Origin: Thalia democratica
Taxonomy: Eukaryota
DNA: 64,000 nt
Direction: 5' to 3'
NCBI GenBank assembly: GCA_965202585.1
Contig: OZ241828.1
Span: forward strand, 53,630,001 to 53,694,000
Positions 6,101-64,000 of this stretch are shown one piece after another. Position 1 is the stretch's first letter. The number at the start of each line of letters is the position of its first letter. The notes under the pieces were generated by a model that was not told the DNA's origin, ran no database searches, and saw nothing but the letters and a program-made list of their open reading frames with translations. A program made the position numbers and the translations under genes.

Positions 6101-9100
6101 AAAATAAACGTGAAAATTCGTGTGTTTTATTTAACGTATACTTTATTTTATAACACACTTAATGTTAAATATGTAAAATGCAAAAAAAAAAAACTCAATA
6201 TAGAGTTTAAGTTAAAATATGTTAAAAATCTTTCATAATTGATGATGTTATTTATATTGTAGTTTTGTAATTACTGTCTTAAGAACGTAAAACAGTATAG
6301 CTAAGAATAGTTGTTTAAAACATTAAAAATAAGTTTTATTAATACGAGATAATAGGTAACTTTAAAATATTCATTAGCTATTTATGTTTTAAATCAACTT
6401 GTTGTATAAAAAGAAATATATTGAAACACTTTTTTGAATAGTTAAAAATATCAAAATTAAAAAAATCAAGTAATTACAGATTTGTTTGACTCTAATCTCT
6501 TTATCAATAGTCATAAGGAGCATATGCATGATTTAGTGGCAATTAATTTGTCTCGGCATCTTGAGGAGCACTTAATCTTGCTTCTGCTCTCAAAACTCTC
6601 TCTGGCAAATTATTAATGACACAGCCTCGTCGACGACAAACGAATCTGAACAAATATTGTCCTAGCCACCACATGAGAAAGTTTGTTTTCCAAAAGTCAC
6701 ATATGGCTAATCATTAAGCTCAATAAGCAGAATAGCTACTCTAATGCTTTGCAAAGCTTAAGATTTATGTAACACATTTTGAATTATTTGCTGAAAATAA
6801 GTTAAGGATTTTAGACTCATACTTTTCTATTCAAGTTGTTTTTTCAAACAACCAGTGAAAATGCAAAACTTCATACAGAATACCAACTTGTATGCACTTT
6901 TTGCACGAATAACTTCATTCTTTTCAACGGATAAGAAATACTTTTGTTAAGAAACTTGTAGCTGCTTTATTCTCGCTACTCAAGTGTAAACAAGACCGGA
7001 AACGAGAACAGCACCTGAAGCCACGAACAGTGCGAGCTTGAAGCGCTTTGGAGTGCTCAACAGGCTTTTCTGCGCTCTCAAATTAGCAACATAATGAAGT
7101 GGCGACTGGGTAGCTGGGGGGTTGTCACAAGTGCTGGAGTGTTTGAAAAGTAGACAGCCCTCCATTGTTGAGCTGTGTATTGTGCGCTCGAATTCCACGC
7201 CTCGCACACAACAAATTGCTGAATTGTTTTTTATTGTAAAGCAAACATGTCCTTATTTGGTTTTTAACTTTATATTTCATACTAATGTACAGCCATTCTA
7301 CGAGCTTCAGAATTTACTTTCAAGCTATTTAAGAAAATAAGCAATTGTGTGTAATAGATAAAAAAAAACTAAATCGATATTAGGTAAACGTTTATATTAT
7401 CATAAAAGGAGTTAACTTAGATTTTTTTAACAACTTTTTGCAAAATACAGAACTTAAACACTTCAACTTATATAAATTTGGCTCTTTCCCACCCTAACTG
7501 CACAATTACTACGTCATAATGATAAAAACTTCCGCTTCAAAACAATCTCTTTCGAATCTAGAGCTGTTAGTCATTTTTATATAAAATTATACTTTAAGTA
7601 TGATAACAGGACAAAAAATTATTTACAAAACTAATAAATTCTAAAGCTTTCGTAGAAAAATTATTTCAGGAAATTTAGTTTCAAGAAACATTATACTTAA
7701 TGTATTATATTTACAAAATACTCATATACTTTTATTGTTTTTTTTTATGTTTAAATATACCTAAAAGATGAATACATTTTTCAAGTTGACGTTGTTTCAT
7801 AAATACACGTCAAGACATCCAATAAATGTTTACTTTCAGTGTGGCTTTCGCCTTTGTTTTCATATTTACAGGCGAATTTGCACGGATTGCCATTGCGAAA
7901 AAGAGCTGAGCTTTTTTTTTTCAGTCTTGCAAGGTTAAACAAGATCTGAAAATCGCTCCAAACTTGGATCGTCGTCTAAGCAATAAGTTGTCACAACACC
8001 GAAGCAACCAAATCGCAGTTGAACGGCGTGACGGAATGGCTGTCAAGTTTGGACGTTTCGCACTTTCAACTTTCAGGCGCCCTGCAAACTGCGACTTGAT
8101 ATTTCGCTTGTCATCCCCGCACGGAGTCGCGAAGGCGTTTGATGTGCCGCGACGTTCGTATCGCAAAGTTTCTTCGATGTTCGCTTTTTTTATTATTCTG
8201 GACTTTTTGCAAATCTTGAAATACTCGGGGTATAAAAAAAAACTAGAGTCTGATTATGTTTTTCAGATAAATGTTTACTGTATTTTTATGAAGTTTAAAA
8301 GGTAAAACAAAATATGCTAAATAAGTTTAGCTTGTAAAGTATCATTAAAAATGTTATATAGAATTAAATTGACTAAACAAAAAAGACAAACTTGAAACAT
8401 TATATCTGGTACATAACAGTAGATTATAACTTTTATTGTAAAAAAATCGTTTAAGATTTAGAGTACGTTAATTCAATACTAACTATAATCGATATTAAGT
8501 TAATAAATAGTATTAAAAAGCTTTTAATAACTGAACAAAGACGGCAAAAAGTAATTTGTACTTTTCTGTGTCCACAACCGAACTCGATTAGCCAAATCAG
8601 ATTACTTTAAATGGTATTTGGAGAACAAGGTTCAAAAAGCGAGAAATCCTTTTATGTTCTGCTGCCTATTGTACTCGCTCATAATCTACATTGTAAGGAG
8701 TCGGAGTAGCACATCACTGCACAGCACTTATCTCGCAGCTACAAGTTTTTCTGCTAAGAGAGCCCACGGCCCTTTTTGTTTTCTATTTGCTTTTCGGCAC
8801 GGCCTCATGTTTGCCGATTGTCATACTTTTTATTGAGCTTTTAGCTGGGATCATTCGCCTAACTTATTATTGCCTCGGTAGATTATCTGCCGCGATACGT
8901 TTTATTTGCTTGTTTGCTGAAAAACTGAATTGGACAAATGCTTTTAAACAGTTTAAGTATTTAAAATAATTGGCTGATGTCAAACTTTTGGGCATTTGTA
9001 AAAATTATTTAATTTTTACAAGCTACCTAGAAAAATAAACTTTATTTAAACTAAATTAAGCTATAGTATTTGCACACTACAAATTAATTTTTAATTTATT

Positions 9101-11270
9101 GGATTAACAATACGGAAATAAAACAAATCATAAATAAAAACGGCTAATAAAATTTTATTTAGCATATGGTAGTTATTGAAGATAATTTCATGAAAGAGTT
9201 GGTTCACTAAAACGCTTTTATAATATTTTAATTTTTTAATGTTAACGTTAGTTTAAAAAACTTTCTATAAGTTGGTTGATTGAAAAATATGTAATTAAAC
9301 TTAAAGCGGCACTGTTTACTATTTTATTTTTCGAAGTTTAAGCAGTCGTTTTAAAGGAAAATAACTTACAATAATATCAAATAATTATTTTAAGAAAAAA
9401 AGGAGAAGCTAATATTGTTATGACTTTTTGTCTTAACTGCTTGCAGTTGTACTAAAGTTATGAGCACTTAAGACTTCACTTTATAAATCAGTGAACTAAA
9501 ATATTTCGAAGCATTACTTTTGATATATAACGTTTTAAAATTTTAAATAAAGCTAGTAAAAACAGATTTTTATATATGTTTTTTTTGTAACATTGATTTG
9601 GAGTATTTTGACAACAAAACTGGTATTAGTATTGTAAAAAGTTAGAAACGTAAAGCATTAAGTCTGACTTAAGTATGACTCTTGATATGCCTTTTCTCTG
9701 TGTTGTAAAAATACTTTCGTTTTATTGTTTTGCTAAACAGTTTTCTCCTTTAAATCAAAACGTATATGAACAAAAACGGCAACTGTTTGACAAAAGACTG
9801 GTAAACATTGTAAAATTCTAAACAGTGATTCATTAAAAAGTAGTAAAAGTTTTATTACCAATAAATACCTAGTGAAAAGTGGTTACACATAGTATATTTA
9901 CATATGTAAAGGTGTCCTGTTTTATAATTTTAAAATAACTAAACGTAATGTTTTATGAACAAAATTCGCTATCAAAAATTATAGACAGCTTGATTTCAAG
10001 AGAAAAACTACGTACAATTCAAGCTTCTGTTTACGAAACAGCATCTAGTCGATGTGTTTAAAACTTTTTGTAAATTGCAAAGCTGATTAAAACAGAAATA
10101 TGTGTATTGATTGACATGATTAAATAATTTTGTTTTGCTTATGTCCTCTTACTCATATTTCATTATATTCATTGATCTTATCTCGCATGTACAAAAACTT
10201 CATCTAAATTAATTTTTGTGTTACTTTTCTTTCTTGTTACATGTCACAGGTACTTAGTGTTAACGTAAGCTTAAAAAACCAAAAATCGTTTTAAAAACAC
10301 AGTTCATACAGTTTTGTAGCTTTAACGTTTTGTTTTGGTAAATAAAATTAAGCTTTACTACTTTAATAAAATATGGTATATGAAAGATAAACAAATAAAT
10401 GAACACTCATATATAGATAGTAGAAAAAGAAGTAAAGTATGTTCAAAAACTTATTTTTTAATGGTTACTAGAATAAGCTGTGACAAATGCAAAAAAATTA
10501 CACAGGATTACTGACGGATACCAAGCCTTGGTAACCAGCAATCTTACAAATCACTAAATTGTAGCATTGGTTAGCTAATAACAGAAATCACAAAACCTGT
10601 GGCTTGTAAGAACCATATAATTATAATTTGTGAACAAGCTGACCACTATACTTAGTCTTTTTAAGACATTCAAATTGCTTTCACATAATTCAAAAAAGAA
10701 AATTTCCCATCAAAAACATTAATAAATTAACTGTTTTATACATATATTTTTTGTTATTAAACATAGCTACAACAAATATTTTATTTAGAATAGTATCGGC
10801 TAACATATTTCAGAAAATTTAGCATTTTGCATGTTTATTTTTTTTAATTTGTACTAATGATGTAGTTTGGTTTTGTTTTTCAAAGTAAACTAGTAGTTTA
10901 CATTAAAAATTTGCTTATAACTAAACGACTTTTTAATTATATCTTTTGTGATAAAACTTTTTAACTAATTTTCAGAAAATTGTAGCTTAAAATTAACTAA
11001 ACGTTTGCAACAATTAAAAAAAAGTTTAAATATTAATTTTGAAAAGCAATACCTTTTGAGATAAAAGATTTGTAATTAACTTAAAGAAAATCAAATAACA
11101 AAAATAACTAAACATTAACAGTCATTTTAACAAATATTTTGGTTCTAATATTTATGTAAACTTTTTTTGTTTAAGTTATTTGTTTTTAACGAAAATAAAA
11201 AATCACATAAATATTACATGTAAACTATCATTTTCTATTTTAAGTTTTTAAACTACGTCGTAAAAACATG

Positions 11271-11315
11271 GTGTTTGACAAGTTTGGATTTTATCGTCTA
11301 TTGGAGCGAAAAAAA
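11271..11315 (+). repeat. Short interspersed repeat, copy A
   Basis: 38/45 ungapped identity to the reverse complement of 56780-56824 (hand alignment). Confidence 0.7.
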
Positions 11316-14300
11316 GTGGTCAGCTGGGATTAGGATGGATGAAAAAAACGCTTTTAAACTTAATGCAACGCAGTAATCATACGAACTTCGACTGCTTGTT
11401 TACCATTTAAGTTAAATTACTTTCTCTTAAGGTTGATATTTTAATTCGCCTGTCTATGAAATAAGCAGTATGCTGTCCAGGAGACTTTTACAACCTACTA
11501 GGCTAGCTATCTATTCTATGTGTATATAAGCATATCTTATTATTTTTTGTTAAATTAGCACACTTAGTTTTAAGCATACGTTTGTAATTAGGCAGATATA
11601 ATTTAACTTGTAGCATAAATTTTGATAAATTAGCACAGAAAAGTATAAAGAAGAAAAATAAACATTTTTTAAAATTATAACTAAATATTGTATCTATAAA
11701 AAGAAGTATAAAAAATATTAGAAAATTGAAAACTTCAAAGACTTACTTTCTTATAAAAAAGATTAGTATTTATCTCAAAAGCATTTACTTTCGTAAAAGA
11801 TGATGATGGCTAAAAATCTGAATCTGTAAAATTTAAAATACTAGTTTTTAGTCAATCAATGGTCTATTTGCAATTTTCATTATAGCTAATTCGTTTTAAA
11901 CAATCTAATGTTTACTGTTGTTCATAAAAAGACACTGTTGCCAGTCCTTCCGCGTGGTTCCCACCCTTTCTTACGTCATAATAAAACATAGGGGGTCTTG
12001 TTGTGACTCTTTTCCAATTGAGCGGCCAACCAAAGCAAGAAATGGTCTTCGCCGGAGCCTGAAAGCTGTAACCCGAGTAGAACGTGTTTTGGGTTCAGCA
12101 GAAAATTTTCTGACCCCAGAAAGATTTTGAATCGATCTCAGCGATTTTACTAGCTTTATTGAGCGCAATTTGCAAACTAAAACACACTTAAGCGTAATTT
12201 GATTTTCTTGTTTGACTGTAAACATTGGTTGGCCGGCTCTAAATTTTTTGTTTGCTCTTTTTGATTATTGTTTGGGTCAGAGGCCTTTTTTTTCAGACTA
12301 TCCATCTTAGACAATGATTTAACTTACGTCTATAAAATGGTTTCAACTTTTATTGAGCTAGAAGTTTTTATTGTTAGGAGTAGAAGTTGAAAGTACATAC
12401 TTTAAGCATCATGATTTTTACTAAAAAAGTGGTTTAAACTTAAATTTTTTTTATTCTTGATTTAGAATTTTTTTTTTACAAAACAAAATTTCTCACCTAA
12501 ATTTGTTTTATTTAATACAGTTTAATGGAGAATAATGATAAACGTTATATTTTTAGTACTTATTTAAGCAGAAATATCGGTATTTTTAAATTTAAAAAGC
12601 TTAGAGATTTAGTTTATAACAGATTAGGTATTATTTGTGTTTAAGGTATGAACTTTTTTATGTCGTGTTATATTTCCAAAAACTAAAAAAAAATTCAAGT
12701 CATACTTTTTATCATATATTGAATTAAGCAACAGTAACTATAAATAATACGAGAAATATATACTAGTCTTAAAGTTACATTGGATCAATAAAGATTATTA
12801 CTTACAGCACCGATCAAAATAGTTTTAGTTAAAAACCTTTGTAAAATTTTAGTTTAAACTTTGTACTTTTCAAGTGTAAAAATCACTCAAGTACAAACGA
12901 TTGTTTAAAACTTAATTAAGGAGCTTAATTTTGTCACACACTTTGATACACTTGAGCGTTAGTGTTTATTAAAGTGTAAATCGTTTAATTTTTTGTTTTT
13001 AGCAACTGATTAAGTTTTAAATAAAACAAATTTAGTTAAGAATTGGTAATTAAAAAAAAAAAAGTAAGCATTTTATTCTTTGTATACACAAAAAAAATAA
13101 TATAAACACAACTTTGTAAAAATTTATGTATTTTTTTAGTATATCAAAAAAAAAGAAAAACAATGAGAAAAGTCAATTAATGTTTAATGATTTTTTTTGT
13201 TCAGTTGATAATAAATAAAAAAACTAAGACTTATTTTTTAAAATATTATAAATTAAGTTGTACTTTAAATTTAAAAGCTAAAAATACAGTATGAAAATTA
13301 AAAAAAAGTTGCTAAACTTCCTTATAAAAAGAAAAACAAACAAAATAGATACTGCACATGAGTCAAAAACTGACAGACCTGCATTTCAAATTGAGGGGTT
13401 GAAATTTTGATAAGCTGTAAAATTTAGCAGTTATAAAATAAAACTGCTGTGATGTTAGGTTAATATAAGATAGAATGCAATAAAGTGACAGTCAGCTTTT
13501 TGGGTGGCATTTCAAGTCAGTTTTACGACACAGTGGTCAATTCAAATCATGAGCTGAGAATTGAGCTTCAGTTTTGATTTTACGACTGCTTTTTATGCTT
13601 AACCACTACCTTTTCATGTTTGCCCTTTATATTTATTTTGTTGTCGTAAAATGATAAGCTTGAATCTACAACCTGCTACTCTACCTTTTACAGGGAAAAA
13701 ACTTGTTTTTTTTAAAGTCTACTGAAGCCTTAGATAAAATTCTGAAGTAGAGTTGTGCTTTGCTGTATTAAAGTAGATATCATTAAAGCAAATACTTATA
13801 GTTTTTAATTTCAAGAAAAATTAAATACTTTTACATTTATACTGCGCAATCACATACTTTGACTTGATTGGTTGCTTGTGATTTAAAAAAGTTTAAAAAT
13901 CAACTTTCGAACAACGGCTTTAACCTTCACATCGATTATGAATAATTCCGGTTTTATAATGCGACTCGCCTGTCAAGCACTAAAAATCAAAATTTTCACC
14001 GAGAAAGATTCTTTTCTTATTTTCTTGTGTCGGCAGTATCCTGTTGGATGCACCTTTGGTCGCAAAAACTAGCCACTCTATAATCTTTTGCCATTTTTAG
14101 GTTAAATTCATTAAAATCTGCACAAGGGTCACTACCACCTGAATAAGTTGATGTAAATTAATTAAATTCTTATTGATTTTGAAGGGAAAGCTAGAAATGC
14201 CTGCTTGCTCAGAGCTGATCAAATTTTTGAATGAAAATGTGTATTTGTTTGTACATTCCAAGCTAAACAAACATTTTTGTCAAAAAGTTTACTATTGTTT

Positions 14301-15292
14301 TGTTTACAAAAAAAAAGGAAACCAGTAGCTGTTTTTATTATGTCATGTGGATTGCATAATAAAAAGATTAAAAAGGTTATAAGCCGTAACAGTTTTGATT
14401 TTTATATTTTTATATTTGTTTTTTAATTTAAAGCAAATTATTTTAAGGTTAAATTTGTTACTATAAACAAAATTTCTTAAAAAGAAAGTCAAAATAAATA
14501 AATATATATATCTAAGGAATTTTCTGTAAAAACATTATGTTTACTAATTTTTTTTTATTTTTCATTAAAGTTTTAAAACAAACTTCTACTAAACATTTTT
14601 AATTTAATATTTTTAGAGAAAGTTCCTTAGGTATATATATATTTATTTATTTTGATTTTTTTTTAAGAAATTTGCTTTTAATAACAAGTTTAACCTTAAA
14701 ATAATTTGTTTTAAGTTAGAAAACAAATATAAAACAAAAATCCTAGTTTTAACTATTTTGTATTAAAAAGTCTTTGTAAGAGTAGTGTTGAAACTTTTAT
14801 AGTTATTGAAATTTAAAAAAATTAGCCAGTTATCAAAACAATTTCAGAAACTTTTTTATACTTTATTAGTAGTAGGCCAGATTTTAGCAAAACTTCAAAA
14901 GTAAGTGTAAGCAGATACTTAAACAGGTTAACAATATTATAACAACTCTATGAACAATATCTAAAATAAATCTGTAGATAATTAACTTAAGGTTTTCTAG
15001 TGATGAACGAGTCAATCTTATTAGTTTGCGACAAAATTGTGCTTGTCGACCAAAAAGAGAGAAGTAATAATTTTCAAAAACACTCCTTGCAGTTTGTGTT
15101 TGCAGTAAACTTTTATACATAAAGCAAAAACCACCGAAAACAGCAGTTATAAAAACACAACTGAGCATAAAAAAGTCTAGTCAGATATATAGAAGCCTGT
15201 TCAGCTGTTTAGCACAAATACTTCAGAAGAACCATATGCCCCGCACGGTCTTTAATCCTATTTCGGGACGAGCTAGCTGTGTCCTGCGACAA

Positions 15293-15346
15293 ACAAAAAG
15301 CCGGTCCGGCCGGCGCACAAAAAGCGGTTAATCCACAAAAAGCGGT
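15293..15346 (+). repeat. Local direct repeat CACAAAAAGCGGT x2 plus one degenerate copy
   Basis: Exact 13-mers at 15316 and 15334; ACAAAAAGCCGGT at 15293. Confidence 0.6.
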
Positions 15347-16549
15347 CTGCCGTGTTAAAATACTATATTTTTATGTGTGCGCGAGTTCGCACTATGACAT
15401 CATAATCCCGCGCAGCTTGACGCAAGCTTTCTCATTGCTGTGAGTCGTCCTTTTTAAGCTCGTACAGCGGATCTAAAGGCCAATGAGGGTATCTGTCCAC
15501 ATTGTGGGTGGGACTTTCGGCCGACTGTGGTGTTTAGTTGTAAAAAATAAAAATTTATTTGCTACTCAATGTTATTTGTTAAAAAAAAAATGAAAACATG
15601 TTTTATACGTTTTGCTTTGTAGTAATTTTTTTATTTATTTAAATCAATGTATGTTCTATGTTAACAAGTATTTAAGAGCTCCACAAATAAAAAAAGACCG
15701 TAATAAAACAGTTTCTACAATTTAACACTGTTTAAATATTTTAACATTACATTACCTTTGTTTTTTATAAAGTTAACTAATTTTTAAACAAAAAATTAAA
15801 ACAAGTAATTTAAAGTTGGCAAACTCTCATCACCGTTATCTGCAACTTTGTTTAATGAAACTTAATTTTTCATGACAGCTCCTCTGAGAGTTTGATTAAA
15901 AAGTAGGCCACCTTTCGCGATTTTAAGTAAACGCATTAAAGACAGTTTAAAATAATCGAGCCGTTGAAAGCATTCTTGTGTTGCCGTGATCAATTCTTTA
16001 TTTAGTTTTATAAATTATGAAGTCGGCTTCATTTCACCACCAGCAAATGCCTTCAAATCGATTTCGAATAAGCCGCTTAAGCTGTGTCAGCTGCTGTAGT
16101 CAGAACGCACCCGATTAAACATTTTGTTGTTATATTAGGTTGTGTACCCAAAATAAACACGAAAGTATCAGGCTGTTGGTTTTAGAACAATTAATCTGTA
16201 ACAGCTTTTAAGAAAGACTAAGCGGTGGTATTTCAAGATTAACACATGTGTTGTTAAAAATCTAACACAATCAACTTACTGTTTTACACAAGTTACAAAG
16301 TTGACAGCACTATTTAAAAGTAAATACAGCGCTTAAGCATTATTTTGTAAGTGGCGATTAATTCATGGCTACCTCAGTTAACTTTGCAGTTTATTCGAAA
16401 AGCCTCAGAAAGCCGCTTATCCGGGCGGTTTGTGCAAATTGTTTTAGTTCAAAACAAACAGTTCGGGTGCTGAGCCTCGGCATTAATAATTGACCGGTTC
16501 GCTTTGACATTGCGCCTCGGAGATTTCGTTCGTCATTCAACATTCACAG

Positions 16550-16572
16550 TGATGTGCCAGCAATTTCCAAAG
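16550..16572 (+). other. Alternative candidate start exon (MCQQFPK|)
   Basis: cattcacag acceptor, ATG at 16552, AAG|gtgagc donor, phase 0 compatible with 28989. Confidence 0.28.
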
Positions 16573-19500
16573 GTGAGCTGAGACAATAACAATCATAATT
16601 TGCACCGTTACTCCAGGAAAGCTTAATTGCGAGGTTTTCCCACTTCAAAGCAATAGAAACCGCAAGCGCGAGCTGCAAACAGTTATCGTCGAAAGTTTTG
16701 CCTTAATTTACAAAGGAATAAACGCACAAATGAACTTGCGTAAACTTCGGCTGTCATTTTGAACTAAATATAAACTGTCTGCATTATAAAGCAGCGAAAT
16801 CAGATGAAAAACACAAACAAAAATTCGCTGTAAATTGTGACAATTTCCATGCACTGTGGCTTTAAATTGAAAACAATAGAAAATTAAAAAAGATTACAAG
16901 TATTTTTATTTATTTTAAAATCAGAAAAAACACTTTTTATACGAACTTTTTGGTAAAATTGTTTTTTCATCATTATTTTGTTAAATTTTCAATAATCGGT
17001 TGAAAAAAGAACAGATGTTCAAATTAATTTCAACGACCTTCAAGTGGGGCCTGCTCATAATTTACAGTTGAATTCGATTGGCCGCGCTCATTGTCGTGGT
17101 GCTTAAGCCAATTATTTTCTAGTGTTTTCAACGACTCGTCATCTCGAGTATAAATTATTTAAATCATTATTACGTCACTTTTGACGGCGAAGGCGAGCTA
17201 TTTCAAAAGAACTTGTTTGTGATTTTTAAGTTTAAATTTCTGTTTCGAAACCGCTTTGTTTTTCTCTTTCTTACTTTCATGTATTACGGAAGCAATAAAA
17301 CAAAGACACGACTTAACGAGCGTTTAAAATGAAAATAGAGAAAAATATTTCGTTTCCTTTAGGCCTGCAATGTACGTATCAAACCACACACTGACGGAAA
17401 ATAATCTTCTTTTTCTCGGCGACAGCTCTTTGCAAATTTGTATCCGAAAGCTTTACGAAATCCTGCTTTTCGGTCGGCAAAGCCACCCAGAGCTGCCGTG
17501 TGTTGTGTTAAATATTAATTCCAAGCTACGAGCTCACAACAAATTTGAATGCTCAGCCGAGTCCAAAGCTCTTACTAAGCTGGATTACGTGAGGATTACT
17601 GAAAGGAGCTGAATGAAAATTTAATGATGGAAAACTTCAAAAGCGCCGTGTATATTTGCTTCCCAACATTTCACTTTTCACTAGATAATGTTTTTATATG
17701 GGCTCTTGTATAAAAGATCGAGGCTTAAAGTTTTGAAATAGTTTTTGTTGAAATATTTGAGTTTGTTAGCTTGAAAATCGTTTTTTTTTCGTTATACTTA
17801 GCAAATATTTAAAACCACACGAAAAACTATGTTTTTTAAGATAATTTTTTTGTTAAAAAAAAAACTATTTGCAGTTACAGAAACTTACTATTTTCTTGTT
17901 ATAATGTAAAGTGTGTGTGGTCTCAATATTTGATAGTTGTTTTAGATAACAACGTGAAGCTTGCTAAAATTCGAACAATTAAATAAAAAATTAATCACTG
18001 CGATGCATCATAATTACGACGTCTTTTCTAAAGTTCATATAAATCCGAACAGTTGCAAATAAATTTATTTTATAAAGCTTCAAGCGAAGTAGTGAGCTCA
18101 TTTCGACAGTGTTATGCCATCACAATATTGTTGCACCTGTAACGAAGTGAAGTTTAAAATGTTTAGGCATGCAAGCATTTATCATGCAGAAATATATAGT
18201 TAATTTCAAGTGGTGCGATCGCTCAATTCAAAAATTGCAACCGCAAGCAGTTTGACTTATCATTTTGCTAATAGGTAACATTTTTATAAATGTATTTTGT
18301 TTTTTGTTGTTTTAAAATCTTAAAACTTTAAACGTTTTCTACAATAAGTACAAGAGTTCTTTTCAAATAAAACAGATTTACTTTTATTTTACTAAGTTAT
18401 TAAACAGTCTGTTGGTTAAAACTTTGTTATTTTTTGGTTGTTTAATTAGATACTCGATGCAACAAATGTATTTTAAATTAAACTCTTATTGAATTTTTGT
18501 GGACTATTAAGAGTTAAAACAAAAAAGAAAACGGATTTATAAAACATTTTCTATAATTTGGAACAGTTTAAAATTTGCTGTATTTTAATAAAAATCTGTA
18601 TTTTTATCATAAAACTTACTTTTAGCAATTAATTTTATAATATTTTGTTAAACTAGAAAAATATTTTTAGTTATCTGTATTAGTTTTGTATGAGAAACGA
18701 CTTAATACATTTATTTTTCCTTAATTTACAAGGTTATTACAAAAAAATTAAAAATAACAAAATAACAGTTATCAAGTTAAGGGTGTAACTACTAATGTAA
18801 TTAAGTTTAGCGTTAAAATTTACGTGTGAAAATTAATTAGGAACGTTTCATACAAATTTGTTATTGAATACTTTTAGACTCAAAAGTTAATAAGTTATGT
18901 CTCTTACTACCTTTAAAATTATATAGAAATATCAGAATAACACTTAAGCATAAGTAGAAAAACTAATTTAATTATCACTGCATCAACAAATTAAGCATTT
19001 AAAAATACTTCGGATACAATTAATGTATTAACTAATATTTTAACACCCATTATAACTTAGCTTATAAATTTGCTGTTATAATAATCTTTGTTTTGTTGTT
19101 TATTGTTTTGTTGTGTTATACGTCTTTTTATTATCTGTTTGTAAAATTTTTAAGATTTGTTAAGTTTTAGAATCAAAGTATTCAAATAATAGTCTTAGTT
19201 TGCATTTTACATAAACTATAAAAAGATACTTTACTAAAAATTGATTATGAAAAACTAAAAATAACTTCAGCGTTAACTTTTTTAGGATAATTTTTTTAAA
19301 AGAAGTTTAAGTAGAACTGATTCCGTTAGAAAAATATTTTAGCTCCAATATAGTTATAAAAGGAAAAGTAGTATATGCAGACCATGTGACCATTTTTTGT
19401 TATAAAATTCGTTTGGTATGCCACTTATGAAAAATTGTCGTCCAATGATTCAGAAGTTGTAACAAAACTAAAAAAACTAATCTTTGTTTAGTATATTCGA

Positions 19501-49205: not shown

Positions 49206-49220
49206 TTGTGACGTCATAAT
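49205..49220. repeat. Exact copy of ATTGTGACGTCATAAT overlapping the stop codon
   Basis: TGA(49203-49205) followed directly by TTGTGACGTCATAAT. Confidence 0.85.
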
Positions 49221-49271: not shown

Positions 49272-49277
49272 ATTAAA
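49272..49277 (+). terminator. Possible proximal polyadenylation signal (ATTAAA); a canonical AATAAA lies at 50975-50980
   Basis: Hexamer match downstream of the stop in T-rich sequence; weak evidence in an AT-rich genome. Confidence 0.25.
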
Positions 49278-52200: not shown

Positions 52201-55200
52201 TACCTAGTTGTGTAATATAGTAATTAATGTGCGTATGATTATATTTTATACCTTTAAGTTTTGTTTTTAATAGAAAAATACACTTCTATTATTACAAAAT
52301 ATTTGAGTAATAAACTTTTAAAATGATGTTATTAAAGTTTACTAGCAGAGTTGCTAAAAGTTAACATTTTATTTACTTATGTTTTTTGTTTAACATTTAT
52401 ACATTTTAGAACATATAAAAGTTTATATAACTAGCTTTATAGAACAACAATAAATTATGTTTGTAATGATATTAAATTGTCAATAATTTGTTTTAAGCAT
52501 ACTAAAAGTTGTTTCTTTATTCAATTACTTAGTTTCTACTATATACCATATAAAACTATTGTTCTAAGGTACTAAAAGTATTTCTTACAAAACAAAGTCT
52601 ATTATTTTACAACTCATTGTTGATCGCTATTTGTAGTCTTTGTTTTTGCAAAGTTTTTCCCACCAAAAGCTTTAACAACAAGTTTATATCGGACACTTAA
52701 AATCACACATTAACACTATTAATATCACAACTTTCTATTGTTTTTCACAAAAAGAGAAAAACATCATTTATTGTTTCAAATTATCACAAATACCGTCACT
52801 CCGTCACATGCCAAATAGCGAAAAAGCTATTAAAAGAAATCGAATCTCATGACAAGCGAAAACAAAGCTTAATCGTTTCTTATCACGTCACAATGGCCCA
52901 CCAAATCCTCTGCAAAGCATCATTCCTCGCCTTTGGATGTCTTGATGAGGCAAGATCCGCTGCAAGTGACGTCACAGCTGCTTTCATGTGCTTTATGACG
53001 TGACAATAGCTGCTTGCGGCTTGTCACCGTTATCGCCTGCACTTTCGGCTGATGCCTCCGTGCCCTTCCGGCCGACCAGCACGTCAGGGTGAGGCGTGGT
53101 TGCAAGCGCAGGGGTCAGTGAGAGTTTGTCAGATGTTTTGGTGATTCGAACATGTGGTGCAGTTAGGGTAGTTTAATTGTTATCACAAAAGTTTATTATA
53201 AAAACGAGTTATTAAAACAGTAATGACGCTTTGTTACAATGTTAGCTGATATTTAAATATGAGGTAAAAAAAAGAAATATTACATTTTTCATATCTAATT
53301 TTTGTTGTAATTTATAAATGAAGCAGATTTTAATTTCGAAAAACTTATTTTTATAAGAAAATCTTAATTAATTTAATCTTTTTATAAGTTTATTTTTGGT
53401 TTTAATCTTATATCACTTTATTACCATTTATTCCAAAAAAAAACAACAATTTATTTTCCATTCATCATTTCAAGAATGTAATAAACGATATATAATTGCA
53501 GACTTAAATAAAACATAATGAAAGGTCAAAAGTAATTTGCTTTTAAGTTTTACCTTACTTCGATTGGCAGTTTTAAATCTATTTACTTTTTAAAATTCTA
53601 AAAGTTAGTACTTAATAACAACATTAAAATTTAGTTATAAACATAAGAACTGAAAATAAAACCAACAATTCAACATACAAAATAACTTAAAGCTTTTTAT
53701 TTTTCGGAAATTTTTATCAGCAAGTACAATAACTTGATTAAAATTCAGAAAAACTAAAAAAAGAAAGAGTTTTAAATTTGATCAAAAAATAAATATGAAA
53801 GGTGGACAGTAGGCTCAAGCGAAGGATTATGATGAAAACTCGTTAATTCACTACTTTAAGCTCAGTAAGACTTTCTGCCAGTTATAATCGCTTAAGGTTG
53901 TGTTAATTTCACGTAAGACCAAGTTAGAAAGTATTTATTTTTGTATAACTGTAGCTTGACAGTTAAAACTTTATAAAAAAATAACGTGAAACTTTTAAAG
54001 TGGTACAACTTAGAGACATACAATAAGTTTACAAAATAAAAAAAGTTGAAATTAAATTTTTTTCATGAAAATTCTTTCCATAACCTTTTTAAGTTGAAAT
54101 GTTTTGAATTTACTTTTACGGATTTCATACATAAAGAGGTAGTCATTAAGCAATTTCTTAATAAACATCAAATCCATCTCACTTTCAGCTGGATCCGCCC
54201 GTATCATAAAACTTTGCCTTTTAGAAATTTTTAAGGTTACGATGACTTTTCCGTTGTTAAAAGCAGCAAAACAACTCAGCGAGAGTTCGCACCTGTCCAG
54301 TGACTGTTCAACTGGAAATTCGAGTTAAATCAAAGTTACCTCTTAATTATTCCCATGCGCGACTCACACAACTTAGGCCAAAACTTTTCGGTAATTTATA
54401 GCCGAGCAATACATCAAAACCTCGCTGAAATATCGCAAGCGAATCGAGTGCTGGCGTTGTTTAATGTTTCGGTAATTTCGAGTTGACAGCGAAAGGTCAC
54501 TTTTTGTGGTGTTTATGACATCACGATGCTTTTAACTGACGATTTTCACAGCAAAGAAAAGTCAAGCGTGTGATAAAATTTTAAGTGTGTTTTCCAAACA
54601 CTGATTGTTTTGAAGCTAGCCACAAAATGGTTGCTTAAATGTTGCCTAAAGAGAGGTTTAGATCAATTTTGAAACCAGAAGTAAGATGAATTTGTGTGTT
54701 GCTAACAAAATTTAATCAAAGTAGTGTTCAAATATTTACATGAATATTAAAAAAATTATCACCTTATCCTAAACATTCTGCAATTTGGTTTTTACAATTA
54801 TTGCTTTAAACATATCCATTGCTCTATACAATTGATGTATATGTATATAGAATATATCAATTTAATGTAAACAAACTTCGAACAGGTACCAAAGTTACCG
54901 CATTATAAAAAACTCGTGCATTATGCTCATTTTCTATTGTTTACTATGAACTAAATATTTCTTACTTCTGTTTCTAAGACGTTAAATAAATTTATTCAAT
55001 AAAACACCTTTATAGTTTGTAAAAAAATTTGAAACATATTTTTAAGACTTAAGGTACCTATACTTTTTTAGTGTTTTTCAAAACTGTTTTGTTTCAAAAA
55101 ATCATGTTCTCGATGCAGTATGCCTTACAAATTAAGAATAAAAATATTTTATTAAGTTTATACTTAGGAAATAATATAAGCTTACATTTAAAAAATAATG

Positions 55201-56779
55201 TTATAAGATTTGGAACTTATGTCAATTTTATATTTAAGTACAACTTGTTGACATCAAAAGATTTTTAAAATGCACTAGTGTTAACGGAAAAATATTACAT
55301 TATTTTTTTGATTGCTAGCATATAAACCTTAACTGATACATTTTCAAATCACACATTTTAATTTAATTAGTCAATAGTTTTCAAAAACCAAACTAGACAC
55401 TTAAAAATTAATTGTGCAACTTTAATTATGATTGTTAAATATTTAATTTACTTTGAAAAATAACCAAAGCATCTTGTACTTTACTTAATAATACTTGTAA
55501 AACACTGCGTCCCGCTAGCAACACCTCGATTAATCATGATGTCAATATCCAAGCAGCCCACGCTCTGCAGCTGATTGAAACCACGACTTTCTCTGTCGAT
55601 AAATCGGTACAAAAATGGTAAAAAAGTTTGTAAAAACTCTTAATATACACAAACGGCACAGATGAGTTGAAAGTCGGAGCAAATCCGTTAAAAAGCAGGC
55701 TGTATTCTTGTGTACCGAGCTTAAGTCTTATGTGACGTAATAATACTTCACAGCTTGAGTCTTAAGAAATCTAATAAGCCTTATAACAATTGTCGGAGGA
55801 TGTATTTATAGCTTCCATGAATTCAGTTTAACAAAACATGCTCCTTTTTGTTTTTTTTTTTCAATCATAAAAAACTTTAACTGAATGAAACCCTTTTACT
55901 GAAAAAACCTAACAGTATAACTTTATATATATACTTTTGTAAGAAAAATAAGATATATATGGCGAGATTTACGCAAGTAAAACTTTAAAAGCTGTAAATT
56001 TATTAAAGGTAATTAAAAGTAGTGCGTACACAAATTTATCATATAAATGACTAAGCAAACTATGAACTTATTTCAGTAGAAATGAAATAATTCTGTTTGG
56101 GCTACGCTTCTGTAATTTAGACTTATGCGAAACCTGATCAAGTGGAAACTATACTAAACATTGATCTAAGTCTAAAGTTATGAACTTTATCCAAAATGTA
56201 AATAATGCTTCAATTAGTAGAAGTTTTAAACTTTTGTTTGTTGTTGGTTTTTCATCAATTTAGACTTTAAAAAACCTGAACTTTTGAGTAGACCATTACT
56301 TTCTAACAGATATTTGGCAAAAACTTTCTATGAGTATCTCTTTTAAAACAGTACATAGAGCGTTTAAGGAAGTATTAGTAAAACTTTTAGCAATTTTTTA
56401 GTTAAATAGTAAAAAAAAACTTTACTTACGACGTATAGAAACTTTATATATTCTTAAGTCGTATACTACTCTAGATTAAAGTATTGAATATCGATATATA
56501 GACTTATTTGTTTTATGAATTTATTAAATAAAAATGTAAAAAGTTTATCAATTAGTTATATAGTTAAAACTATAAGTTTTACTCGTGAGAAAAAGCTACT
56601 AACAAAGAATATTTTGCTATAGTCTTAATCAGAATCTCTAGTAAGTTTCGTAACTAAGATAAGCATTTTAAAAATTGTTTGAGACCTTTACTGAAGTTTA
56701 TTTTTACAAAAGAACAATTGATTAAAGTAAAGCAAGTTTTAGTTTTTGTGTTTTTAAATCCAAATAAACCTCACGAAAT

Positions 56780-56824
56780 TTTTTTTCGCTCCAATAGATA
56801 GGAAAATCTTAAATTGTCAAACAC
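56780..56824 (-). repeat. Short interspersed repeat, copy B
   Basis: 38/45 ungapped identity to 11271-11315; shared core TCTATTGGAGCGAAAAAAA. Confidence 0.7.
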
Positions 56825-59800
56825 TATTTTTTTTTAGTTTTCAACATTCAAAAAACGATATTATTTACTGTAAAATGACAGCATATTAAAATAATTAAAT
56901 CAAAAATCTTTTAAAATTTGCTTTTCATTTTTCAGTCTAGTCTTAGTTCACCAGCAAGTTTATTTTCTTTTCCGTAGGCTCTTTTTGGACTACGTTTAAA
57001 ACTTAACTCAGTCAATGTTTAATTAAAGTGTAGTATATTTTGTAAAACATAATTTAAGCAAAGCTTTTAAAAATATAGTTGTTTATGGGCTTTTATACTG
57101 CATTTAGTTTTACAAAGATGTAAGTTTAAAATACATAAAATACTAGGTTTTGTCATTTAATGCTTAATGAGTAAAAAATCAAAAACTAAAATTTTCAAAT
57201 TCAGAGATATAGTTAAAAGCATTTAAAAAAAGTTTTACCAGCAGCACATATATTATAACAAATGTTTAGTATTATTTTAATCGTAAGTAAATATTTACCG
57301 TTTTTTTTGATTAGAAACGTAATCAGTTATGATTCATAGAAGTTTATTTTTAATTTTGTATTACCACCTTTGATTATATTATCTCGTGTTTAAAAAATTC
57401 AAGAAGAATGAGCCTGTTTAATATTAATGACTTAATTGTTATATTTTAATCTTAAAGACTATAAAAAAAGTGTAAAATGTTTTTTAACTGTAACAACTTA
57501 AAATACTTTTGTATCATTCGTAAAACGTCGTCTTTTTACATAAATATCTATAAAACGGGTAAGTATCTAAGAAAGCAGTTTTGCTCAACTTAATTTGTCA
57601 AACAGTTTATCTCCAGGTGCATATTCAAACATATTTTTGATTAGATAATAAAAAACTAAAAATAACAAGTTTATAACTTATTAAAAGTTTTGATAAAATA
57701 TTTTATAAGTCTTGTACGTTACACATTTAAATGTGTTACTAACAAAAAAGATTTTAGCGACTCAAAGCGTTCAAAATATTTCCACTTTCCATCATTAGTT
57801 TGCATAGCCTTAAGCAATTTCAGCGATTCGACATCGGCTGTGAGATCATAAACGCTTGATTATTAATTTAAACGAGCAATATTAAAAGTTTCAACATTAT
57901 TTTGTGTATGCATAATTGTATCAAATAAACTATTCTTACACAAAATTACCGTTTTGTTTTGTACTAAAATTAGCTAAGATGAAATTGATTGTTTTTTTCT
58001 AAAATATATTTTTGCTAATATAGCTAAACATGTTATTGATAGCATAGCTTAACATATAGATTTTCTGTAACTGTAACAAAAAATTAGAAAACTTTGTAAA
58101 CTCTGTAAACATTTGCAATAAACCACAAAAAGTTTTTACTACTATTTTGATCACACTTTTACGGTTTAAACATAAACTAAATCGAACATTAAATTTTGTA
58201 CTAAAACAAATTTACCTTATTTTAATGACAGTTTAAAAGATAAAAAAATTTACTTTAAAATAATTAATATTTTAGCACTATTTAACACAAGTAAACAGTT
58301 CAAACCTATAATATTTTACACGCGTTCAGTGTTTTTACTAAAATACATTTAACGATTCAGTTTTTATAGTCATAATATCAAAATATTACCAACGCAATGT
58401 TTATTATTCAAACAAGTTTTTACAATTGTTTATTATGCATATTTTTTTTTGTTAAAGAGTTTACAGAGTAAAAAGTTGTATTTGCTTTGTTTGGGTTTAA
58501 AAACATATAGAAACTATCTTCTTTTCAATATATGGCACAACAGCACTAAACTAATACTTTATACAATTAAAACTATGTTATACACAACAAAAATTGTCAA
58601 TAATAATTTTTGTTCCCATAATATTTATTATTAAATCAAGTCTTAATATCTAGTATTTGTTTAGAAAAAGGTGTGACCTTTTTTTAAGTATATGACAAAA
58701 ACTAGTTTCTCACAGAATTTTAATTGTTTTTATTAAATTTGTACTCTGAATGAATTTTTAAGCATTATTTCTCATCACTCGTATTTAGAATGTAGCTTAT
58801 AAAATAATTAATTAAGCTTATTTGTTTAATCGATTTAACTTTTCTTTAATTTTTATATTTTTATTTGTAGTTCTTTACGGACATTTTTTCAAACATAACC
58901 CTAAATTTTTGACTTCACTTCAAGCTTGAAAGTAAAACTAAATTCTTTAAAAAACTTCATACAATTTAAGAATTTTCAACATAAGTCTTTTTAGTTATCC
59001 GAGTCTTGATACTTCATTATCAGCACCATCTAGCAATTTACAAAGTTTAACTTGATCAGAATCGCTAATAAACTTAATTCGGTACATAAACGGTCAATTT
59101 GTAAAACAAAACCGAAACGACACACATTTTGTCGGGCAGCAACTGTTAAGTCTCTTTGAAACATGAGATTGCAAACTGAAAACAACTTGAAAAAAGTGTT
59201 TTTTTACTAAGGTACAAGTTTGTACAAAGCCGTTTATTAAACTTTAACTGGTTTCCTATTACAATAAATTAGCCACTTTTATTGTGCGTAAGGCTTCCAT
59301 CAGACAGCAATAAAGCAAACAATTGCAAAAATTATATCGAGTAATCGTTTTAAAAACGAGAATAAACGGTCTTTTATATTCATTTTTATATGAAGATGGT
59401 GATTAGGTATAGAATTCTATCTTAAAGTGACTAAGATTCTCTAACAAGCGTTCTGAAATCTTATACAAAAATTAAAATGATAAAATATTAAATTGTATTA
59501 AAATGCGGCGTAATTTTGCAGAAAAAGCATTAAATTTTTTGTAACAGTAAGAAATAAGTTTGTAGTTGAAAAATGGTATGGGCTGTAGATAACTCCACAG
59601 TGGGAAGCGAAAACAAAAACTATAAAAACTATTAATTTTTTGTATAATTTTTAAAGTTTAAACTTTTTGTTGTTAAATTTTAAAATTGTAAATGTACACA
59701 AGCTAGTAAAGTATTATGATATATTCTAAAACAGTATTTTTATCAAAACACAATGAGTATTTTAAAATAGACACACTTATTTCCAATGGTAGTTGCAATT

Positions 59801-61230
59801 ACTAAAATGAAAATATTTATCTTTATTTTAAAGAAGTATATATTAAAAAGTCTATCAAGTGGAACATTAAAGAAATCATATAAAAGTTTTAGATAATCAA
59901 TAAGAAAACAGTACAAGTGTTTCTCAAATATTTCTTTAAAGAAACAAAACGAAGTTACGAGACTTCTTCTAAACGAACAAACTAAAGTTTAAAATTGCTT
60001 TCAACTAAACTTAAACTTTTATCAATACAAAAAGTTGCGCAACCTTATGTTTGTCACAAACTTTTTTTGAGAGGTGAACTTAATTACTTGGTAATCCCGG
60101 GCAGCTTTGTAAGGTAACTACGTTGAAACTACAACACTTTTCGAAGGACAATAAACATAATCCCGCTCTGTTATCCTTACACCTTTTCAGTTTGTTTTGC
60201 GTTATACTTTGTCAAGCTAAACCAATTATAATAGATTTTAAGGTCTAGCAATTTTTTAAAAGTTACAAAAAGTATAAGGTTAGATTTTTATGTTTTTAAA
60301 AAGTATTTTAACTAATCTGAAAGTGATTTGGTCAAAAACCCTTCTTAAAGTCTATAGTGTTTTTTTTTTGAAACATTTGATTTTTTTTTAAGTCTTCTAC
60401 AGCGCTTAAGCTATATTTTCTATGTTTTTTTTCTAACTAAAACTTTGCTAAAGCTGTTTAAAAAAAATTATGATAACCCACAAAACTAAAAAACAATTAT
60501 TGGTTTTGATTAAAAAAGATAATTTTTTAGTGATATGCATCACCAAAAATTTACATTGTTGTATTTGCATGAGTATACTTGAAACAAAAATCTACAGAAT
60601 TTTCAATGTAATTAAGTTAAATGCACTATAATTATATTAGCCATGAATTTGAAATAAAAATTGTTTTGGTGTAAAACGTCAACAAAACAACAATTTATAT
60701 TCGTCAATCCCATTAAGTGTGACAGGACAACACGAAATAATTAAATTTGACATTTGTAATGTGCATGGGAAAATTGAATGTATTAATAAAAACAGAATGT
60801 TGCATAAAAATACGATACAAAAATCCATACTTTCTTGATTTAAATTTTTAAATTACAGCAGTAATGTGAAATCTTACATTCTGAGAAAATTATTCGAATT
60901 GACTAAGGTCCTTAAAAGTTATTTTCAGTAAAACAGACAAAACTTTCTTTTGTTGTTTACATGATGCATTGACAAGAAAGTTTGTCTAAAAGCAATGCAA
61001 GTATTTAAATTTCTTGTTGCAATACAATACCTTTTATGTAGCTTAGACAGTAAGCTGATTTTATGTATAAAAGCTTATAGTTTTCAATTTAGTTGACTTA
61101 GTGCTAAAATAAAGGAATGATGTTTAAGAAAAGTTTTGAATTTAATAGATTTAAACAAACATAGAGTTGAAGTCTAAATAAAATTACTTTTTATTATAAG
61201 TGACCTGACCAATGTGCATAGTACTTTTTA

Positions 61231-62340
61231 TCATATGGGTTGCTGTGCGGGTTTTCTTAAAACTTTAGAAACACTGGCTAAGAACATAAATCGTTTTTAA
61301 AACTTTTTGAATTTCCGTTTAAAAATGTTTCTTTAAATAAAACTTTCATAAAAATATCATAAAAATATTCATTTAAGGTGTATTAAATTACTGAAATTAA
61401 ACATATCATCTTGAAAACAGAATTCAATAACTTTGATACAGTAATTTATTATGCAGAATTAAATAATACTGATTACACTATATCGTTGAGTTATATTTAG
61501 TTTTACGGATTTATTTTTTTAAATGTTAGAAACAAACGGAATTGTGAAAAATAATGGTTTTATGCTCTACTACGCTCTAGCGGTTAAACTGGAAAACTGT
61601 TGTTTATCATTTACCAAAAAAAAAGCATCACAAAATAAATTTTAAACTATTTTTACACATCATTAAAGTTATAAACGTATAATTTATTGTATACATTTAA
61701 AAAAGAAGTCAACTATGGCAGTAGTAATATCTTTAAATAAAAAGAAATACATATAAAGCTTTGTATTAACCAAAATCTAGTATTTAGTAAGTATAAGTTT
61801 TTTTTGATAGTTGTAGGCTTGTTAAGACCGCACTAAAGTTTAAAAACCATAAGTAATAATTTTTAATTTTCTTCTTTAGATTGTTATTACATCCAGAAGT
61901 ATTTGTATACGTACAACAAGTCGTATTAACTCTTTATATAAACTTTAGAAGGTTTTTTACTGTTTTTTTTTTACTACTAGCGTCCTATTTGTATAAAAAA
62001 AAAAACTTTGTTTAGTTGTAAAAAAAGAATTTAAAAACATATTGTCTTTTACTATAAAGAAGCAAACCCAAGCTTGTTTAATTTAGCTTTTTTTAGTTTT
62101 CTTTAAACTGCTATACTAGCTTTTAATTGATTTAACCAACTAGCTTTTTCTATAATTTATTTTACCAAATGTTATAAACAAAGATTTTAATTTCTCTACT
62201 TTAAAATCTTATAAAGATTAAGAATGAAAAGCATCGTTTAACAAACTGCTTTCAAATGTTATACATAGTAAGGGGTTGTTGCACCTAACTTATTAGAGAA
62301 CTGACCTTTGGGTTCATACCATGTTCTCATTATTCTGTCT
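61231..62340 (-). other. Possible last two coding exons of a convergent minus-strand gene (62340-62306 and 61277-61231)
   Basis: taactag|..AAG|gtcagt and ttatgttcttag|..TGA splice in phase to DRIMRTWYEPK-ASVSKVLRKPAQQPI*; no recognised homology and no upstream exon found. Confidence 0.18.
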
Positions 62341-64000
62341 CTAGTTATTAAGCTCTTTGATAGATAACTTTTATAAAGTCTTTAATTTTTGTAGGTTTTT
62401 AATTAATGACAAGCAAATTAGTTTGATTATTTATTTACCAACCTGTTTATAATTAAAAAACATTTGTACTTTATAACTAACTAGTTTCAAAACATTTTAC
62501 TCATGCTTGATGAGTTAAGTAAAAATGAATACAAATAAGATTAAGTTATATTGTTACATTTATTCGAGTATGCTTTAAGATAGTTCTGTATAAAAAACTC
62601 TTAACTTTAGATAAGCTTGGTAATGTTTTTTTTTTCAATCCATTTTAAATGCGTTTTTACAATATAATGTATTATTGTTGTTGAAATAAAATCAAAAGTT
62701 TAATAATCATCTTGAATAAAATATAACATCTATTCATTTAAGATAAACTTAGTTATATTAAATTTAATAGAACAAAATACATTATCTTAACTTTGGAAAT
62801 TCTCTTTGCATAATTGCACAATAAAGCTTTTACATACTTTAATAAAAGCAATAACTACAATACAACAAAATGACTTCAATTCGTTTTAAAATATATGTTA
62901 TTTAGATTTTAGAAGAACAAAATTTTTGTTTTCAAATATACTACTCTTAAGTGATTTTTTTAATTGTTGGCTCTAAAATGACTTGTGTAAAAAATAAATT
63001 TTGATTTATATGACTAGAAACATCTGCTTTGACATAATCTTAAACCAAACAACAAATAAGTTTATGATGTCAATTGCTTAAGATTAAAAGTCTCACGGGT
63101 AACCCTATCCTCTAACTTTTATCGACAACCAAGTTTCAAACTTCTAATTCTAAGATGACTATATGTGTAAAACAGCCTTTTCTGCAATTTTGAAACGTTT
63201 GTTATTCAGAATTTAATACTTAGCCACAATTCCAGGGCTCAATCAAAAAACATTAGTTTGATCCAATAATTTTTTATCCTTAACGGCTTTTGATTAACTT
63301 TGTTTTACTTGAAAATAAAGTATTGAGTATAAATCCAAGCTTTAAGCAAAACCAACTGTTTTATTTTTAAATGCTATAAAAATCATGAAAAAAGAATTCA
63401 AAATTATAGTTGTATTATGTATATGTGTTTGAATAGCTATGGCTAATTCCTGTGTTATGTGAATGATACTAAAGAAGGTAGTATGCTTTTCGAAAGTTGT
63501 TTAAAAAACATCTAGTTAAGTAATAATTACTACAGTTCTACTGATTTAGTTGTTAAAAGCTCTAAAATACAGCTTTAAGTATATTGTGATAGATAAGAGG
63601 CATTAAAAATTTTTAGATAATCAAGAAAAAAACTTAAAAAGTTGTAAATCTATCAATTAAAAAAAAAGTAATTGTTTGATTTCCTTACACGGAAGAACGT
63701 TTATTTGTACACCAATGTTTAAATTTTAACTAATTTTAACATTGTTTACGTTCAAAATCTTTTTAATTATATGACTGTTATTTAGGTCTTTTAGGGGACA
63801 GATTTCGTACCAATAAGTAGTTTAAAAATAAAGTGTTTTTAGTTACGTCATAATTGTAAAAAAGTAGTGTACATTTGAATCCTAAATCAATTTGTACAAA
63901 AATCAATTAAAAGCCCTGCTAATATAAATGTGCTTTGTTGTATTAAAACAAAATATATTTAAACTCCTATGCGCAAGGGAATTTAGTTATCGTTCTAAAA

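Follow-up and report, generated by a model that had tools for sequence, protein, structure and literature searches.

What reads a 16-bp palindrome that recurs, at about one copy per 3.5 kb, through a stretch of the genome of the salp Thalia democratica? The stretch (contig OZ241828.1, positions 53,630,001 to 53,694,000 of the forward strand; 64,000 nt) is called the window here, and all positions given are those of the whole stretch. A preliminary description, made from the letters of the window, had listed three exact and a series of degenerate copies, and had left three options for them: an abundant binding site of a dimeric factor, possibly of the basic leucine zipper (bZIP) type, a genome-wide structural signal, or the footprints of an old mobile element. 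We find that the palindrome is indeed enriched. The first option fits the data best, and we give it, in the form set out below, a probability of roughly 0.55.

Enrichment and symmetry of the palindrome

The 16-mer ATTRTGACGTCAYAAT was found as an exact match at 33782, 41620 and 49205, the same three sites as before, and in none of 100 dinucleotide-preserving shuffles of the window. When up to three mismatches were allowed, 18 matches were obtained against 1.13 expected. Since the GC content of the window ranges from 24% to 48%, shuffles within 200-bp blocks were used as a stricter control. By this measure there were 12 copies with at most two mismatches where 0.2 were expected, about 60 times chance, and 18 with at most three where 2.3 were expected. 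Thus, about two of the weakest copies, but not the others, may have arisen by chance, the candidates being those at 18111, 17166, 54512 and 55729. The half-site ACGTCAYAAT occurs 14 times (0.31 expected) and tops an unbiased list of enriched 10-mers in the window. The core of the palindrome is the octamer TGACGTCA of the cAMP response element (CRE), of which the window holds six perfect instances (0.45 expected), and the 16-mer lies far above what this 8-mer core would predict. The enrichment of the 16-bp palindrome in the window is therefore confirmed.

The octamer had been said to carry conserved wings that reach well beyond a normal CRE, and the counts bear this out. Among the 43 ACGTCA hexamers in the window, 33 are followed by Y and 14 by YAAT, for which about 2% would be expected. 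Both wings, ATTR and YAAT, are present on three of the six TGACGTCA cores; base composition predicts about 0.0004 per core. A logo over all ACGTCA occurrences, taken from column frequencies, reads ATTRTK-ACGTCA-YAAT, and across 19 copies the consensus is matched in 15–18 at positions 2–4 and in 17–19 at positions 13–15. These results show that the wings exist in their own right and do not simply follow from the core.

Further, the wings belong together as a pair. The outer ATT wing is found at the correct distance even where the inner half has become TTAC, CCAC, CTAC or TCAC (copies at 7505, 32314, 28375, 17166 and 55729). The single arms ATTRTGAC and GTCAYAAT are not enriched alone, with 73 and 72 occurrences against 86 and 82 expected. 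After a search for separated arms in both orders, the pair proved to be enriched only at a spacing of 8, which is the exact palindromic spacing. A far wing kept beside a degenerate inner half, together with arms enriched only as a pair, points to a two-fold symmetric reader and not to a monomer that recognizes a half-site. A genome-wide structural signal is conceivable, though hardly in the form of a stable cruciform or hairpin, for which arms of eight bases with no spacer between them do not suffice.

The cores vary in a restricted way. The variants observed were T(G/T)ACGTCA and TGACATCA, and among ACGT-centred octamers only TGACGTCA (11-fold) and TTACGTCA (3.4-fold) exceed the expectation from composition; TTACGTAA is absent from the window, where about 2.6 would be expected. 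The ACGT centre is kept in 14 of the 18 copies with at most three mismatches. In three near-copies (15391, 18111 and 54512) the central CG is replaced by CA, on the same strand each time, and no other centre dinucleotide appears more than once. The CA-centred copies may be CpG-transition relics of former sites, in which case some copies would be decaying.

Copies, host gene and GC-richer islands

Many of the copies lie within a latrophilin-like gene on the + strand. Its 5′ part is defined by metatranscriptome contigs (runs X7 and X8), and the open reading frames (ORFs) recognised by homology run on to the stop codon at 49203-49205. The first coding exon extends from the ATG at 24583 (MLTHKWSKSSSWLPSNVIILLLLLVN...) to 24661 and encodes a signal peptide. 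It is followed by an intron of 5.7 kb, by exons at 30351-30579 and 31827-31945, which are joined from 30579 to 31827, and by an exon that starts at 36191. Where RNA contigs reach 30351, their unaligned upstream sequence matches 24632-24661.

The copies are listed below, with the exact ones first. No strand is assigned to a copy unless one is stated.

33782-33797: exact ATTGTGACGTCATAAT, in the GC island 33621-34110, which is non-coding and lies midway in the 4.2-kb intron bounded by exon 31827-31945 and the exon starting at 36191.
41620-41635: exact ATTATGACGTCACAAT, about 265 bp downstream of the last olfactomedin exon, within an intronic island that is non-coding and conserved.
49205-49220: exact ATTGTGACGTCATAAT, which shares one base, its first, with the end of the stop codon TGA (49203-49205) and otherwise forms the beginning of the 3′ untranslated region (UTR) of the latrophilin-like gene.
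48373-48388: ACTGTGACGTCATAAC, two mismatches, within the last coding exon, where it encodes D-C-D-V-I-T.
24629-24638, + strand: perfect half-site ACGTCATAAT in the first coding (signal-peptide) exon, codons N-V-I-I, 23 nt before the 5′ splice site 24661/24662.
32096-32111: ATTATGACGTCACATG, with a perfect left half; it lies 150 bp past exon 31827-31945, in a non-coding GC island of the intron.
32314-32329: ATTACCACGTCATAAT, with a perfect right half and perfect wings on both sides; it shares the island of the copy at 32096.
33124-33139: TTTGTTACGTCATAAT, intronic, not in a GC island.
28375-28390: ATTATTACGTCACAAC, in a GC island of intron 1 (24662-30350).
7505-7520: ATTACTACGTCATAAT, upstream of the gene.
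11967-11982: TTTCTTACGTCATAAT, in a GC island.
15391-15406: ACTATGACATCATAAT, in a GC island; the centre is CA instead of CG and resembles a CpG-transition relic.
17166-17181: ATTATTACGTCACTTT, three mismatches, a weak copy.
52879-53007: a cluster in one intergenic GC island, with CTTATCACGTCACAAT (52879), the bare core GTGACGTCAC (52966) and TTTATGACGTGACAAT (52992).
54512-54527: TTTATGACATCACGAT, three mismatches and a CG-to-CA centre, a weak copy or relic.
55729-55744: TATGTGACGTAATAAT, three mismatches, a weak copy.
63839-63854: TTAGTTACGTCATAAT, right half perfect.

All degenerate copies of the preliminary description were recovered, some with offsets of 1–6 bases since the start of the conserved half had been marked there (7511 becomes 7505, 11971 becomes 11967, 15393 becomes 15391, 33128 becomes 33124, 48374 becomes 48373, 52880 becomes 52879, 52993 becomes 52992, 54513 becomes 54512, 55731 becomes 55729 and 63842 becomes 63839). 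The entry at 52966 is a core that lacks wings. The half-site at 24629 had been missed.

Six copies are intronic (28375, 32096, 32314, 33124, 33782 and 41620), while those at 7505-18111 and 52879-63839 are outside the recognised gene, in DNA without convincing ORFs. In the window no copy adjoins a splice site. The coding sequence of the gene, about 4 kb long, contains one full core only, and the copies within it leave the reading frame undisturbed.

A further reading places the signal at the level of RNA. The palindrome could act in splicing or in RNA stability, or copies within one pre-mRNA could pair with each other; in each case palindromy would allow use independent of strand. At least three copies (24629, 48373 and 49205) are carried in the sense strand of the mature mRNA and the intronic ones in the pre-mRNA. 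Moreover, the better half (ACGTCAYAAT) is on the + strand, which is the strand of the gene, in 9–10 of 12–13 asymmetric copies, a marginal excess with p of about 0.1. However, copies on both sides of the gene show this bias as well, in DNA for which there is no sign of + strand transcription. A palindrome with two sides and both wings would be superfluous for a single-strand reader, and the pairs at positions 4/13 are mixed (A..T, G..T, A..C), with no preference for the combinations that pair in RNA. The hairpin would have a stem of 6 bp, mostly A-U, and a loop of 4 nt. We consider an RNA signal improbable.

The copies had also been described as lying mostly in GC-richer islands, and this agrees with our counts: 13 of 20 copies are in such islands, which make up 34% of the window. 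With the motif itself masked, the GC fraction around the 14 non-exonic copies peaks at 0.43–0.44 within 100 bp to each side and falls to about 0.30 by 300 bp, so that these copies are centred on GC peaks of about 200–300 bp. Control words that contain CpG have a local GC between 0.32 (ACGT) and 0.41 (CCGG). The observed/expected ratio of CpG is 1.2 in the islands versus 0.85 in the AT-rich background. Altogether, there are about 21 non-coding unique islands, one every 1–4 kb, mostly of 250–700 bp with two above 1 kb, and with about 40–46% GC (for example 6861-7310, 16301-16760, 26191-27520, 34371-35130 and 51491-52200). The motif is present in 8 of the 21, and the majority have no copy.

The islands were also searched for genes and for other motifs. 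The RNA contigs cover exons 30351-30579 and 31827-31945 and not the islands at 28.4, 32.1–32.3 and 33.8 kb. Rfam at gathering thresholds and a tRNA scan detected no non-coding RNA genes in the islands. Coding content was rejected for the motif-bearing islands: their ORFs look non-coding, and the conserved one differs between species by a 1-bp indel. A second island motif, AAGCGCTT, was not significant (4 against 2.1 expected), and GCTCGTA was dropped as an island motif since its occurrences have no common context.

The placement of the copies bears on another possible reading, in which the palindrome is a genome-wide mark of functional GC-rich islands, that is, of exons and conserved non-coding blocks alike. 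An abundant dimer would then have an architectural or co-transcriptional role, such as nucleosome phasing, insulation or slowing of RNA polymerase II to aid exon recognition, instead of acting at gene-specific enhancers. The density of copies, their presence in intergenic DNA, introns, two coding exons and the 3′ UTR, and the share of non-coding islands that carry one are in line with such a mark. Against it stand the lack of copies next to splice sites in the window, the single full core in the coding sequence and the majority of islands without the motif. On balance we hold this reading to be possible and unlikely.

Conservation, test of a repeat origin and occurrences elsewhere

Protein word searches with the last exon and the olfactomedin exon yielded relatives at about 10% divergence, which are short marine-metagenome contigs (L005, L008 and L009), and a set of distant latrophilin loci (L001-L004, L006 and L007). 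In the alignment with L008, coding exons are 90–98% identical, ordinary intron 55–75%, and the island at 41441-41720 88–100%. The 16-mer at 41620 is identical at 16 of 16 positions, and four of the five bases immediately upstream of it differ. The island contains a 1-bp indel relative to L008, which argues against coding. By sequence comparison, the motif-bearing island at 41.6 kb ranks as a conserved non-coding element. We also observed that the GC-richer intronic block 41441-41830 is conserved between the two salp species like the neighbouring coding exons.

Two further copies could be compared with L005. The copy at 48373 in the last coding exon is identical there, and the copy at the stop codon (49205) is kept as CTTGTGACGTCACAAT, in which the Y position has gone from T to C, still within the consensus, and an insertion of 2 nt affects no more than the outermost wing base. 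Hence three copies (41620, 48373 and 49205) are conserved in relatives at about 10% divergence. A separate observation concerns the exon at 48811-48830. It reads AACGTCATTACGACGTCATCGG in the window and ATCATGACGTCAT in L005, a Thr-to-Met difference that creates a full TGACGTCA core, so that the gain or loss of a core has entailed the replacement of an amino acid. For the island at 33.8 kb a copy in a close relative was sought through a spurious ORF, without a match, and a search of the Joint Genome Institute (JGI) metagenomes with the GAIN-domain exon found no relative. Another organism (organism B, run X3) differs from the window by about 1–2%, too little for judging the conservation of individual sites.

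This conservation bears on the idea that the palindrome marks meiotic recombination hotspots, as M26 does in fission yeast, with the GC peaks as a trace of GC-biased gene conversion. The M26 sequence ATGACGT is contained in the motif and acts through a bZIP dimer (PMC9775316, PMC2396409), and the GC peaks are centred on the copies. However, the island at 41.6 kb is far more conserved than its flanks, which indicates purifying selection; at a hotspot with biased conversion, more substitutions would be expected and not fewer. Erosion is also common among hotspot motifs, and here the motif is kept. A hotspot mark is therefore very improbable.

At the stop codon the motif is absent from the distant loci L001-L004, L006 and L007, where the C-terminus GG(V/I)NM(I/T)TNL* is conserved. 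Loci L001-L004 do not align with the window at the DNA level, and their olfactomedin domains are 37–52% identical in protein. The preliminary description had suggested that ascidian sequences are rich in this motif, and the distant loci do not support it. In the roughly 54 kb of L002-L004 there is no TGACGTCA, and ACGTCA is as frequent as composition predicts; L001, which brings the four loci to about 74 kb, has two TGACGTCA cores and an approximately 2.6-fold excess of ACGTCA. Since these loci show no enrichment of the motif, the enrichment appears to be restricted to a lineage and not a general property of tunicates, as far as four species tell. Unrelated to the motif, the latrophilin locus of L001 holds a 31-bp tandem repeat with GGCGCGCC at 8600-8850.

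A more specific proposal is one that we regard as rather speculative and decidedly unlikely. In it, the salp lineage would have multiplied an extended CRE palindrome as a genome-wide mark, at the DNA level, of the functional, GC-richer islands (in the window, the conserved non-coding blocks) of a genome that is otherwise very AT-rich. A bZIP-type dimer with Maf-like extended specificity would read it, in effect, and unlike a set of ordinary enhancers, as part of a lineage-specific architectural system of ‘island definition’.

Could the copies instead be what an old mobile element left behind, as footprints or as remnants of its ends? When the 200-bp flanks to either side of the copies were compared all against all, similarity was confined to the motif itself, in agreement with the preliminary description. 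A comparison of the window with itself gave four trivial hits and essentially no internal repeats, and we found no inverted-repeat arms around the seven sites searched and no terminal repeats or target-site duplications at the copies. At five copies between 27.9 and 33.9 kb the summed contig depth of about 105–131 corresponds to single-copy sequence, while a nearby low-complexity stretch reaches 250–385. Thus, the copies in the window have no repeat context and do not map to one repeat family.

The metagenomes provide an argument for a mobile element. The exact 16-mer is present in at least 120 JGI metagenome contigs, a number attainable by chance alone. The counts that follow were made over 119 of them (L018, labelled human-gut metagenome, was not included) and hold among the matches listed. 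The three richest contigs examined are ORF-poor and eukaryotic-looking. Over their 490 kb, the 119 contigs contain 81 additional TGACGTCA cores against an expectation of about 6, and CRE cores are often in tandem there with a spacing of 11–12 bp. YAAT follows 5.6% of 359 other ACGTCA hexamers, against 1.2% expected and 22–33% in the salp window. A weak preference for the same wings around CRE cores therefore exists outside salps, and it is far stronger in the salp window. In contigs of one eukaryote, L058 (1784-2552) and L080 (275-981), as well as in L011, L039 and L064, the 16-mer stands at the inner end of each arm of an inverted-repeat element that is itself repeated. The arms measure 139–170 nt and the spacer 429 nt, a second CRE-like site is found beside the 16-mer, and the element has the look of a foldback element or a miniature inverted-repeat transposable element (MITE).

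A mobile element with this motif thus exists somewhere, and three copies in the window resemble CpG-transition relics. Nevertheless, the salp copies lack shared flanks, internal repeats and inverted arms, their own arms are enriched at a spacing of 8 only, their depth is that of single-copy DNA at the five read-covered sites, and those in coding sequence leave the frame intact. The mobile-element option of the preliminary description is thus not supported. We consider an origin from a mobile element largely refuted and as an explanation of the copies barely credible.

A probable dimeric reader and known counterparts of its site

The strict palindromy, the two wings at fixed spacing, the bZIP-like core variants and the conservation of one host island all favour a dimeric, probably bZIP, factor that reads extended flanks in a Maf-like manner, with its sites in conserved regulatory islands. 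The reader would be a symmetric dimer, most likely of the ATF/CREB class, with contacts or a DNA-shape preference that reach 8 bp from the dyad, so that it would take the CRE core and three to four flank bases on each side. The site would mainly be a component of single-copy, GC- and CpG-richer non-coding islands of about 200–500 bp in introns and intergenic DNA, and these islands may act like conserved cis-regulatory modules, with a few copies placed in coding sequence or where the 3′ UTR begins. That the islands are single-copy, CpG-rich and GC-richer, and that one of them is conserved, points to such modules.

Several points weigh against this reading of a dimer in regulatory islands. The bZIP basic region usually contacts about 5–6 bp per half-site, so that the outermost wing bases would need an extra contact or an indirect effect of DNA shape. 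Classical cAMP-responsive CREs are located near transcription starts, at distances of up to a few hundred bp, and no RNA contig starts at or covers the two intronic islands examined, although such contigs are weak evidence of absence, cannot show starts and would miss transcripts of low expression. The model of regulatory modules leaves the copies within coding sequence unexplained. The conservation comparison spans a single host island. The + strand bias of the better half, if real, is not expected of a symmetric DNA reader. Finally, we infer the protein reader, its bZIP class and a transcriptional role of the islands, the class solely from the resemblance of the motif to known sites.

If a 16-bp site does recur every few kb across a salp genome and within conserved non-coding islands, the protein that reads it would rank among the animal's dominant DNA-binding factors, and the site would give easy access to the regulatory architecture of a group in which functional genomics has hardly begun. 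With its wings, the motif would also be a more specific probe than the octamer, be it in pull-down and footprinting experiments or in counts across the genome.

Among known systems, the CRE/ATF site itself, TGACGTCA, is bound by bZIP dimers of the CREB/ATF class and shares with the salp motif the palindromic core of 8 bp and its central CpG. The R and Y that adjoin the salp core fit the usual RTGACGTCAY preference, and hybrid cores such as TTACGTCA and TGACATCA are tolerated, as at sites of the ATF2/Jun type. Unlike the CRE, the salp motif has three more conserved bases on each side (ATT/AAT), which makes it a 16-bp site. It is also present at a high density, and most copies are intronic, in intergenic islands or within the gene and not beside a shown transcription start. 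The D-box of the PAR-bZIP proteins (RTTAYGTAAY) does not fit, as only the hybrid TTACGTCA is enriched and TTACGTAA is absent. In Drosophila, the DNA replication-related element (DRE) TATCGATA, read by DREF and BEAF-32, is an abundant short palindrome of promoters and insulators. Like the salp motif it is typical of a lineage, has a central CG, exists as very many single-copy sites and has a dimeric reader. Its sequence is different, the reader family probably is as well, and an association with promoters of the DRE type is not part of the salp evidence.

The fission-yeast hotspot M26 is a CRE-like ATGACGT bound by the Atf1-Pcr1 bZIP dimer (PMC9775316, PMC2396409). The A-form of the salp motif includes this heptamer, whose role is chromatin opening instead of classical promoter activation. 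The two differ in that the salp host island is conserved, which speaks against biased gene conversion at a hotspot. The motif is described in neither Salpa genome paper (PMC5174732, PMC10686999) nor in the tunicate literature that was searched by 10- to 12-mers and TGACGTCA. New are the extension to 16 bp, the density of copies, their setting in non-coding islands that are conserved and the confinement to a single lineage; the core is a textbook CRE.

Another long palindrome built on the same CRE core is the Maf recognition element C-MARE, the site of MafB and MafA homodimers. The MafB homodimer reads the 14-bp C-MARE TGCTGACGTCAGCA through half-sites TGCTGAC (PMC7606469), and specific flank bases at 5–7 from the dyad are read by the bZIP. 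Conserved symmetric flank bases are present at the same positions 5–7 in the salp motif. The flanks themselves differ: they are TGC-TGACGTCA-GCA in the C-MARE and TTR/YAA in the salp, with one further A/T outside, and as no salp copy has TGC...GCA flanks, the salp motif is not a MARE by sequence. The T at -7 and the A at +7 are common to both, and C-MARE is the best precedent for a bZIP dimer that reads this far out.

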